NCBI GenBank assembly: GCA_002189035.1
Contig: CM007990.1
Coordinates: 4,216,001-4,280,000 of the forward strand
Direction of reading: 5' to 3'
Length of the DNA stretch: 64,000 bases
From: Utricularia gibba
Taxonomy: Eukaryota > Plantae > Magnoliophyta
This document shows, one piece after another, positions 61,875-64,000 of the stretch (position 1 is its first letter; each line of letters opens with the position of its first letter). Below the pieces are notes generated by a model. The model ran no database searches. It was given only the letters and a program-made list of their open reading frames with translations, and was not told the origin of the DNA. The position numbers and the translations under genes were made by a program.

Positions 61875-61933
61875 TCAGCCGTTGATTCAACGCGGATCGG
61901 CCCGTTGATTTTTTCCCCTTCCTCTCTATAAAT
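61875..61933 (+). promoter_or_regulatory. Two MSA/MYB-like AACGG motifs and a TATA box upstream of the last gene
   Basis: tcagccgttgatt at about 61875 and ggcccgttgatt at about 61899; ctataaat at about 61925-61932; a third ttcaacggtt at about 62122. Confidence 0.45.
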
Positions 61934-62199
61934 ATGTGCCGTCTAGAGTTTGTCTTACCCGAAACGCGTCGAGAGAACGGTCTTCGGTGGTATTCGCTCT
62001 AGGTTTTGTTTCGGATCGAGAAATTTTCTGTGAATTCCTTTTCTGTGAGGGTTGCTAATCTTTTTGTTTGATCGAAGGTTTCTGAATTCGATAGTCTAGA
62101 AGTTGGTTGAATTGTAGGAAGTTCAACGGTTTAGATTCTCCTCTCTTCTTGTGTTGTTACTTTTATTGTGCCTGTTTAATCTTGAATCGGTACCAGAAA

Positions 62200-63155
62200 A
62201 TGGTGGATTCGATGAACTTGCACGTGCAGCATCCGCAGCATCTACCTCAGGTAATCAACTTTCCTCAGGATCATATGTTTGCATCACAGCTGGGTCATAT
62301 CATTTATGTTGGACCTCAATCTATTCAGATGAATCCTGGATACGATAATTGGATTCTTCCGCTGGAGTTTCAGAAACCGAACCCTAGCTTTGGGGCTTGG
62401 AAGCCGCCGCAAGCTGGGTTGAAAAGGTCAATGGGTCCAAGGGTCAACAGGGACGGCAAGAGGTATAACGGTAAGGGGAGGACGCAGGTTCATAAGTCGC
62501 TGAACAGGAAATCTGTTGATTATAATTCTATGTTGGTGAATGATTTGCAGCATCGGGGTGTGCTGAAGCCTAGAAATTTCCTCCCCCGAGCACCAATCCT
62601 CGTCGGAAGAGCTTTGGTAACGATAGCGTTGTTCCTTTTGCTCCTAGAAACACCACTTCTTTCTTAATCAGGTCAAAGGGAAGACGCGGGAACGCGCCTT
62701 CAGTTACCCCATCTCCACAAACTCCCGCTGTATTTCCAACCCCGAAGTTCTCGCCTTTGCCGGACGCTTTGGTAAACAAGGCAGAGGAAGCGTGGGGCAT
62801 TGATGGCTATGGCTCTATGAATGGGCTGATCAGGTTGAAAACACAAGGGCATGAGCCCCCTGTCGAGGTGCAAGTAGACGATGAGGATGTGGGAGAAATG
62901 GAGTCAAGCGAAAGTGATGTGGAACAACATGTTGAGATGGAGAAGCGTGTGGATCAGGATCTCAGTAGGTTCGAAATGGTACTCAATCCCACATCGATGA
63001 TCAGAAAAATGGACGACCAAGACACTCATCTGGCTCATCTGCAGGAGGAGAACTCGATTCTGAAGGAAAAGGTGGTAATGATTGAAAGAGAGATGGAAGA
63101 GCTGAGGGCGAAGATGGATCTTTTTGGCACAAAAGAAAACGGACGAGAGCAATGA
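62200..63155 (+). CDS. PRL1-interacting factor A-like protein (basic region, APRNTTSF motif, acidic tract, C-terminal coiled coil)
   Basis: Single coding exon after a probable 5'UTR intron (acceptor at about 62196). ORFs 62107-62667 and 62757-63155 join with one extra base, best placed in the C5 run 62583-62587. Motifs PFAPRNTTSFLI, WGIDGYGSMNGLIRL, SSESDVEQHVE.E.R.D.DLSRFEM, DDQDTHLAHLQEEN match the plant family I recall as PRLI-interacting factor. Confidence 0.85.
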
Positions 63156-64000
63156 AACTCATTGCAGCATCAGATGAATCATTGCACCTTCAGTGGAAGC
63201 AGCAGGTGCATGGAATAGGAACTGGTGATTGGAGTATCATCAGATCGCAACTTCACTACGTTGTCATTAGCCAAGAAAACACCAGCTTTTTTTCCCTTAA
63301 ATTTCTCATGTAACTTAGTATTTATTTCAAGTATTGAAAACTGTACTAAATTGTTCGCCCTCTGTCCCCTTGGTTGTCACGCTGGTTTATAATATGCAAA
63401 TAGTGATTTTTTCCCCGCATAAATTAATATTAAAAATGTATAGAATCCGATGCTCAGTTATTGCAATAATATTATTCTGATACAATGCTAACCAAAATTG
63501 ATATCATCTGTTTGGAATTTCAGTAAAATTTAAAACCATCAAATTCCGATGCGGGAAGTTGAACGCCGTTATTGGGCCCATTGGGCCTGTGAAAAAACGC
63601 GAGAAAAGATGGGCATGGAGTAGGCCGGCGTGTCGCCTGATGCCCGACTTGTGAAGATTGATTTGCAGGGCTGCTGCTGAATTCTGAGTTGTGAGCGCGA
63701 ACGCTCACCCTAACTGATTCTGACGCCGCTGCTAATGGGGTTTCCGTTTTGTTGTTCATTTTGGGGACCTCGAAACTTGTGTATTCTCTTGATATTAACT
63801 TTTTTCCCGTCTCTAGTATCTACCAGCTTTTGGGTTGGCAGGCAGGTTCTCCTTCTGGGACAATGGAAAAAAGCTTACACCTGTTTATCAATCAATCTCT
63901 CCCCCCCCCGGCCCCCCCTTTTTCCACCAGTAGTGGAATCGGAATCCATCCACCATCAATCTCGCAACTGCACTGTTCTATCTATCCCATCTTTGCAGAT

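Follow-up and report, generated by a model that had tools for sequence, protein, structure and literature searches.

The 64,000-nucleotide stretch of the Utricularia gibba genome that we analysed (contig CM007990.1 of assembly GCA_002189035.1, forward-strand positions 4,216,001 to 4,280,000; hereafter the window, in whose numbering all coordinates are given) carries close to its end, at 62200–63155 of the plus strand, a gene that its sequence places in the PRLI-interacting factor A family, which is found across streptophytes. The gene is intact and transcribed, and we propose, with a probability of about 0.6, that it represents the green-lineage branch of a pan-eukaryotic HEXIM/HEXIM-like family, with a product that is predicted by analogy to inhibit the plant P-TEFb. 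The proposal turns on a ten-residue motif, APRNTTSFLI, that resembles the kinase-binding motif of animal HEXIM proteins. In human HEXIM1, the corresponding PYNTTQFLM binds and inactivates the active site of CDK9. The basic and acidic regions of the protein keep this motif covered until 7SK RNA binds the basic region, and the coiled coil binds cyclin T (10.1101/2024.10.10.617642; 10.64898/2026.09.03.749171).

Gene structure and the frame break

In the assembled window, the coding sequence is split between two frames. The ATG at 62200 opens frame 1, which stays open to 62667; its part up to 62580 holds the basic tract together with AWKPP and KRYNGKGR. Frame 3 is open from 62574 to the TGA at 63153–63155 and holds PRRK, VPFAPRNTTSFLI, an acidic tract, DQDLSRFEM and then LAHLQEENSILKEK / MIEREMEELRAK. 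The two open frames overlap where the reading changes from one to the other, within a run of five C at 62583–62587. We compared this region with four public sequencing runs, two of RNA (X1 and X3) and two of DNA, one of which (X9) comes from a relative about 2% diverged from the window. All four had one extra C behind 62582. Because every run carries the extra C, the break is an artefact of the assembly: the run has six C in reality, and the gene is intact. The initial annotation, which had joined the two frames by repairing a single-base deletion, quoted strings that are all present in the translation. It missed a 78-nucleotide intron, however, and 26 of the residues that it read as protein are intronic. 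The gene is organised as follows.

61927–61934, plus strand: possible TATA box, TATAAATA, about 270 nucleotides upstream of the ATG; a weak call from sequence alone
62200–62250, plus strand: coding exon 1, with the start codon, 17 codons, from the translation and the joint in the RNA contigs
62251–62328, plus strand: intron 1, 78 nucleotides, in frame, GT..AG, removed in contigs of RNA runs X1 and X3
62329–63155, plus strand: coding exon 2 to the TGA, holding all conserved blocks and reading through only with the six-C run
62471–62550, plus strand: optional intron, 80 nucleotides, GT..AG, inside the coding exon, seen in the RNA contigs of X1 and X3
62583–62587, plus strand: C run, one C of which is absent from the window and is inserted behind 62582 in all four runs

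The RNA contigs extended upstream past 62100. The joint between the two coding exons lies at 62246>62325 in these contigs and was read with the cut moved four places to the right, which gives GT..AG borders. The spliced N-terminus agrees with the SQ-MNR-YG-W start of the orthologues, and the mature protein, after splicing and restoration of the frame, comprises about 292 amino acid residues.

Spliced contigs in both RNA runs show that the gene is transcribed. Comparison with the 2% diverged relative gave 9 synonymous and 11 non-synonymous differences, corresponding to a pN/pS of about 0.33, none of them in the APRNTTSFLI motif, the YGSM block, DLSRFEM or the coiled coil. Thus, the gene is intact, expressed and under purifying selection. 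Over 62100–63300, the relative differed from the window by 26 substitutions and a 3-nucleotide deletion at 62152, and the last 290 or so nucleotides of the coding sequence, which encode the DLSRFEM block and the coiled coil, were free of its substitutions.

The second, optional intron lies within the coding exon, and its removal shifts the frame into a TAG at 62571–62573, before the motif. In terms of contig word depth, the spliced form stood at 51.5 in X1 and 71.2 in X3, versus 21.9 and 30.6 for the retained form, so that the unproductive form was deeper than the coding form in both RNA runs. This arrangement has the appearance of an exitron-like element under regulated unproductive splicing.

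The PRLI-interacting factor A family

The restored protein contains all the blocks of its family in order.

62395–62481, plus strand: basic Arg/Lys region with a Trp (AWKPPQAGLKR...KRYNGKGR), the putative positional counterpart of the HEXIM basic region and its WKPY
62515–62580, plus strand: DY-x-x-x-L-x-x-LQ block followed by a basic stretch, by alignment the counterpart of the orthologues' GYKPPTLNELQSQNRLKARRF block
62640–62669, plus strand: APRNTTSFLI, a motif of the HEXIM 'PYNT' type, which carries the signal in the profile comparisons described below
62703–62756, plus strand: Ser/Thr-Pro cluster (VTPSPQTPAVFPTPKFSP), kept as VSPCPVTPAILPTP-FSP in the plant family
62793–62840, plus strand: second conserved block, WGIDGYGSMNGLIRLK, near-invariant in plants and fitting the protist pattern D-x-SM-x-GL-[IL]
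62874–62927, plus strand: acidic tract (VDDEDVGEMESSESDVEQ), placed as is the acidic region of HEXIM
62928–62978, plus strand: HVEMEKRVDQDLSRFEM block, conserved in plants
63012–63119, plus strand: C-terminal coiled coil (…LAHLQEENSILKEKVVMIEREMEELRAKMD), from coiled-coil matches in Pfam and the PDB and a helix in the AlphaFold2 (AF2) model of an orthologue

Family membership was evident from the C-terminal piece of the protein, which matched 113 angiosperm and lycophyte proteins, many of them named PRLI-interacting factor A (best E 1.6e-49, with 52% identity over 91% of the piece). None of the 113 carries a precomputed Pfam domain. A profile search returned 261 proteins at E <= 0.001, the best 150 of which were all plant-type, and an alignment search free of low-complexity sequence returned 880 matches, the best 120 of which were all from plants. 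The members extend from zygnematophycean algae (Mesotaenium, Closterium) through liverworts, mosses, lycophytes, ferns, Ginkgo and Amborella to all groups of angiosperms. Arabidopsis is represented by AT5G19900 (P0319), with 494 amino acids.

Reading from the N-terminus, these proteins have a basic tract with a Trp; the block [GE]-[YF]-[KR]-P-P-x-L-x-E-L-Q-x-Q-N-R with a basic stretch; the motif AP-R-NTT-S-F-[IL]-[IM]-RAKK; the Ser/Thr-Pro cluster; EEWGVDGYGSM-GLIRLR; the acidic tract; RLDHDLSRFEM; and a coiled coil with LEEENL-LKERL. Within the motif, P, N, T, T and F are near-invariant in more than 180 plant sequences. A Trp in the basic tract upstream of the motif was found in 123 of 187 sequences, 13 to 198 residues before it (median 63). 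From algae to angiosperms, then, plant orthologues keep the motifs in the same order, as the proposal of the initial annotation demanded; they do not keep the exact 'WKP' that it quoted, the conserved element being a Trp in a basic tract of the NWKGKK type.

The window copy is a divergent member, sharing about 50% identity with the others, which share 65–84% among themselves. It has RSKGRRGNAPS in place of RAKKSGGIASL and lacks the C-terminal GDVCSEKSVG tail. The AF2 model of the orthologue P0001 is disordered apart from helices at 87–95, 158–165 and 233–284; the first is a short helix just before the motif, in the block that corresponds to 62515–62580, and the last is long, with a predicted confidence (pLDDT) above 90. 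The window protein is taken to be likewise mostly disordered, and it is probably nuclear. The Ser/Thr-Pro cluster at 62703–62756 may be a set of sites for a proline-directed kinase.

Two features of the wider family deserve mention. Many eudicot members, including the Arabidopsis protein, have 450–520 amino acids, versus about 300–340 in the class nearest to the window gene, which makes at least two size classes among angiosperms. A moss subfamily (Physcomitrium and Sphagnum; P0254, P0206, P0174 and P0199) has the motif R-A-P-[YF]-N-D-[SN]-[ST]-F-L-M, in which an aromatic residue occupies the position of the metazoan PYNT Tyr and ND[SN] replaces NTT.

Resemblance to animal and protist HEXIM proteins

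Metazoan HEXIM1 and HEXIM2 (PF15313, IPR024872) have the motif AP-x-NTT-x-F-[LI]-[IM], with the same invariant positions as the plant family. The two groups of proteins also resemble each other in layout, with an upstream basic region containing a Trp, a short helix between the Trp region and the motif, a downstream acidic tract, a C-terminal coiled coil and a largely disordered chain. HEXIM1 itself is disordered with a layout of helices similar to that of the AF2 orthologue model (10.1101/2024.10.10.617642). At the position of the metazoan Tyr, the plant proteins have Arg, or else His, Leu or Cys, and the moss subfamily Tyr or Phe. Compared with human APYNTTQFLM, the window's APRNTTSFLI is identical at seven of ten positions, the figure given in the initial annotation.

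For quantitative comparison, HEXIM sequences were collected by scanning metagenome contigs for back-translated PYNTTQFLM, which gave 88 loci; open reading frames were taken from these, and 35 diverse sequences were aligned (A2). All 35 matched Pfam HEXIM, with E down to 3e-45, and P, N, T, T and F of the motif were invariant among them. One metagenome contig (L033) carried a mammal-type HEXIM2 gene, probably host DNA, and was excluded from the alignments.

Profile–profile alignment of the plant family (A1) with A2 by hhalign gave a probability of 79% and an E of 1.6e-5. The aligned stretch ran almost without gaps from the YKPP block of plants to RAKK, 50 columns in all. With the alignment of 187 plant sequences, the values were 84% and 7.6e-6. 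In this comparison, the stretch at 62515–62580 was paired with the HEXIM linker upstream of PYNT. The real score of A1 versus A2 was 44.7, compared with 23.6–25.3 when either profile was reversed and 12.8 +/- 2.0 (maximum 18.7) when the columns of A2 were shuffled; shuffling in blocks of eight columns, in which the motif may survive, gave at most 38.3. Searches with the plant hidden Markov model (HMM) pointed the same way. Real HEXIM proteins scored up to 29.4 bits (P 3.3e-11), 12 of the 35 reaching at least 21 bits, whereas the highest of 3,535 HEXIM controls, shuffled locally or reversed, scored 9.3 bits. From the opposite direction, PF15313 was the sole recurring family other than coiled coils among the Pfam matches of plant members, hitting 33 of 71 with a best E of 0.0025; the orthologue P0001 scored 9.4 bits on positions 17–50 of this profile.

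BLASTP of the plant protein P0014 against animal HEXIM returned a single collinear alignment of 183 residues, from the motif to the coiled coil, at E 7e-6. BLASTP also paired EHVEVERRLDH of an orthologue with ELIELESKLDH of animal HEXIM, a pairing that is not significant alone. The piece of the window protein compared by itself with HEXIM reached an E of 0.002 in BLASTP and 3.4e-4 in hhalign. When window pieces were searched against Pfam and the PDB, the matches were generic coiled coils only, with none to Pfam HEXIM. The ESM Atlas, a protein-language-model search independent of alignments, gave a reciprocal result. With a plant query, the leading named clusters were all HEXIM, and when an animal HEXIM was the query and PF15313 clusters were set aside, the three nearest among 7.7 million were a cluster named 'PRLI-interacting factor A family protein' and two further clusters of Streptophyta. 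On these comparisons, chance is excluded as the source of the resemblance between the plant family and HEXIM. The suggestion of the initial annotation that the plant protein is a cryptic HEXIM homologue is accordingly supported by a significant profile–profile match and a conserved order of motifs, but not to the level of the Pfam threshold.

A survey of HEXIM across eukaryotes by Chivu et al. in 2024 (bioRxiv 10.1101/2023.02.19.529146) reported orthologues in choanoflagellates and ichthyosporeans and 'patchily distributed HEXIM-like sequences' elsewhere, and favoured an origin near animals (10.1101/2023.02.19.529146). The HEXIM files of that survey hold no Streptophyta (10.1101/2023.02.19.529146). 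We compared the plant family by eye with the trimmed published alignment (supplement file 67 of Chivu et al.). Most of its non-metazoan members have AP-R-NTT and not AP-Y-NTT. The glaucophyte Cyanoptyche has HAPRNTTQFLI, cryptophytes have RAPRNTTQ-, and Goniomonas has HAPRNTTSD; AP-R-NTT is also found in Picozoa, Malawimonas, Spironema, Haloplacidia, Capsaspora, Pirum, Sphaeroforma, stramenopiles and ichthyosporeans. The motif region of Abeoforma is APRNTTLFLIRNK, and APHNTTSFLIRD of Oxyrrhis (APHNTTSFLIR) resembles TPHNTTSFLIRAKK of Solanaceae. In some of the protists, the residues that follow are identical to those of plants (-SFLIR- or -LFLIR-). HEXIM-like proteins thus occur outside Metazoa, whereas the initial annotation noted that HEXIM/7SK is usually described as metazoan, and the Arg in which it saw a possible sign of a different mechanism is the usual non-metazoan state and not a peculiarity of plants. 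From the distribution in this alignment, Arg is the common and probably ancestral state, with Tyr a metazoan novelty, and Chivu et al. also stress the Tyr as such a novelty (10.1101/2023.02.19.529146).

The resemblance to protists extends beyond the motif. Between the motif and the acidic tract, protist HEXIM-like proteins have a second block, D-x-[ST]-[ML]-x-G-[LIV]-[LI], represented by VDGSMQGLI in Baffinella, DLSMQGIL in Guillardia, DVTMAGLI in Colponemidia and, in the untrimmed sequence, VNAFGTMEGLM in Rigifila. This block fits VDGYGSM-GLIRLR of plants and VNPYGSMNGVIRLR of algae, and is absent from animal HEXIMs. The protist proteins also have a C-terminal coiled coil with L-x-x-EN-x-x-L, as does the plant family, so that by eye the two share the order APRNTT motif, D-x-SM-x-GL-[IL], coiled coil. 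They differ in that the protist proteins keep a clear WKPYSQLTWEEK box, by which some are detectable by Pfam or PANTHER; at the position of this box, plants have only [FY]-[RK]-P-P-x-L-x-[ED]-L, which falls short of the box itself. Two independent blocks in the same order, together with the acidic tract, the coiled coil and the lack of any other green HEXIM-like candidate, make common descent the best reading, and we consider it quite likely that the PRLI-interacting factor A family is homologous to the HEXIM-like family.

File 67 spans more supergroups than the text of Chivu et al. suggests, including glaucophytes, cryptophytes, Picozoa, Malawimonas and hemimastigotes, as well as CRuMs, stramenopiles, dinoflagellates and colponemids. 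This breadth speaks for HEXIM having arisen much earlier than in the holozoan lineage, the origin favoured by those authors.

Candidate function and alternative readings

By analogy with HEXIM1, the plant protein would dimerise through its coiled coil, and the dimer would dock on CDKC;1/2-CYCT1 and keep the kinase inactive by placing the NTT-F motif in its cleft. Nucleic acid bound at the basic region, phosphorylation of the adjacent Ser/Thr-Pro cluster, or both could exert control. We put forward inhibition of P-TEFb (CDKC-CYCT) by the family only tentatively, at somewhat less than even odds; the remaining probability goes for the most part to a nuclear role that has diverged. A more far-reaching version, in which HEXIM dates to the last eukaryotic common ancestor and streptophytes keep it as the PRLI-interacting factor A family, possibly with an RNA-gated CDKC-CYCT brake and an undiscovered 7SK-like RNA or other ligand, strikes us as doubtful at present.

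Several observations weigh against the placement of the family with HEXIM as a P-TEFb inhibitor. When the ten residues of the motif were cut from both alignments, neither flank did better than reversed controls in hhalign (10.7 versus 11.0 reversed for the upstream halves, 22.2 versus 23.8 for the downstream ones). Because the flanks without the motif score like reversed controls, the measurable link to animal HEXIM is, at the level of sequence, one short motif and its placement. The pairings that the initial annotation drew between the basic regions, between DLSRFE and DFSETYE, and between the coiled coils find no individual support in this comparison, and we make no claim of separate homology for any of the three. 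Indeed, the WKPY-x-x-L-x-WEE box of HEXIM and its F-x-x-DFSE-x-Y block (the Tyr271 region) are unrecognisable in plants, where DLSRFEM resembles DFSETYE only loosely. The stretch that follows the motif in plants, RAKKSGG, is basic, whereas HEXIM has acidic residues there. No plant member among the 71 scanned reached the Pfam HEXIM gathering score of 29 bits, and a plant profile search of the PDB returned no HEXIM1 chain, the coiled-coil chains included. The ESM scores of 0.63–0.77 lie below the tool's 'lead only' line of 0.9, notable as their reciprocity is, and the protist comparison, on a trimmed published alignment, was visual and unscored. No Rfam family, 7SK included, was found within the 64-kb window, a result that says little; to our knowledge, plants have neither a 7SK-type RNA nor LARP7-type partners. 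The HMM searches of Chivu et al. yielded no protein from Chloroplastida (10.1101/2023.02.19.529146), and the known partners of the family are only PRL1, the source of its name, and SHP2, from immunoprecipitation with mass spectrometry (PMC11723901).

These points bear differently on the alternatives. The strongest competitor, although we still regard it as unlikely, is a HEXIM-like descendant that no longer acts on P-TEFb and has another nuclear role in RNA biology or transcription, such as one alongside PRL1 in the setting of the NineTeen/MAC spliceosome-associated complex, or one in transcription-factor complexes; its NTT-F motif and Ser/Thr-Pro cluster would then dock on, or be a substrate of, another proline-directed kinase. 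Such a role would fit the yeast two-hybrid interaction with PRL1 that gave the family its name, and the enrichment of AT5G19900 in an SHP2 immunoprecipitation together with the Ser/Thr kinase At2g40120 (PMC11723901). It would also fit the conserved plant blocks that animal HEXIM does not have (the SP/TP cluster, EEWGVDGYGSM-GLIRLR and DLSRFEM) and the lack in plants of F-x-x-DFSE-x-Y and WKPY. Yet the best-conserved element in plants is the CDK9-binding motif, the one HEXIM element with a defined mechanistic role, and plants have the target kinase family, CDK9/CDKC with T-type cyclins, according to Chivu et al. (10.1101/2023.02.19.529146).

Convergence would instead have an unrelated, disordered plant protein evolve AP-x-NTT-x-F within a basic/acidic/coiled-coil layout that is generic. 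Short linear motifs do arise in this way, the significance against animal HEXIM is lost with the motif, and the Pfam scores stay below threshold; it is nevertheless improbable, given that invariant (P, N, T, T, F) and variable positions are the same in both families, that the alignment runs almost without gaps over 50 columns, and that protists share the second block in the same order and, as in plants, have Arg or His where the motif varies. The reciprocal best relation among 7.7 million ESM clusters also argues for descent, and with no other HEXIM-like gene reported in Chloroplastida, the family is the natural occupant of that slot. That the locus is a pseudogene, with a real frameshift and only relic similarity, is least credible of all. 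The break at 62583–62587 in the assembled window and the premature stop in the more abundant splice form would suit it, but the frame-restoring C in all four runs refutes it, and the gene is transcribed, with a pN/pS of 0.33 and untouched conserved blocks.

The reading of the locus as a green-lineage HEXIM-like inhibitor of P-TEFb would have consequences beyond U. gibba. Plants have P-TEFb, made up of CDKC;1/2 and T-type cyclins, and CDKC is implicated in flowering, the circadian clock and virus infection; we know of no plant counterpart of the 7SK/HEXIM brake. If the reading is true, the family offers a testable candidate regulator of CDKC, and hence of Ser2 phosphorylation in the C-terminal domain of RNA polymerase II, of flowering, of the clock and of virus infection. 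Plants would possess a layer of transcription-elongation control that they are currently assumed to lack, and there would be a mechanistic hypothesis for a family that all land-plant genomes contain but that is still uncharacterised (AT5G19900 in Arabidopsis). The origin of HEXIM would be pushed back towards the eukaryotic root, and Arg, not Tyr, would be the ancestral residue of the kinase-binding motif.

Plants are known to have small, largely disordered proteins whose short motifs engage CDK-cyclin complexes, namely the KRP/ICK and SIAMESE/SMR families. These target the cell-cycle kinases CDKA/CDKB, not the transcriptional CDKC, and have no sequence relationship to the window family; no KRP or SIM family appeared among the matches of the Pfam or ESM Atlas searches.

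In the library that we searched, no paper connects HEXIM with plants, with PRLI-interacting factor A or with AT5G19900, and the CDKC/CYCT interactome literature that we searched did not mention AT5G19900; one apparent plant-HEXIM match proved to be 'cyclo-heximide'. The sole public trace of the link that we came across is the name 'Protein HEXIM2' carried in UniRef by the Anthurium amnicola transcript P0014, evidently an automatic best-hit annotation. The sister transcripts of P0014 bear the names of coiled-coil proteins to which they are unrelated (Early endosome antigen 1, Centrosomal protein).

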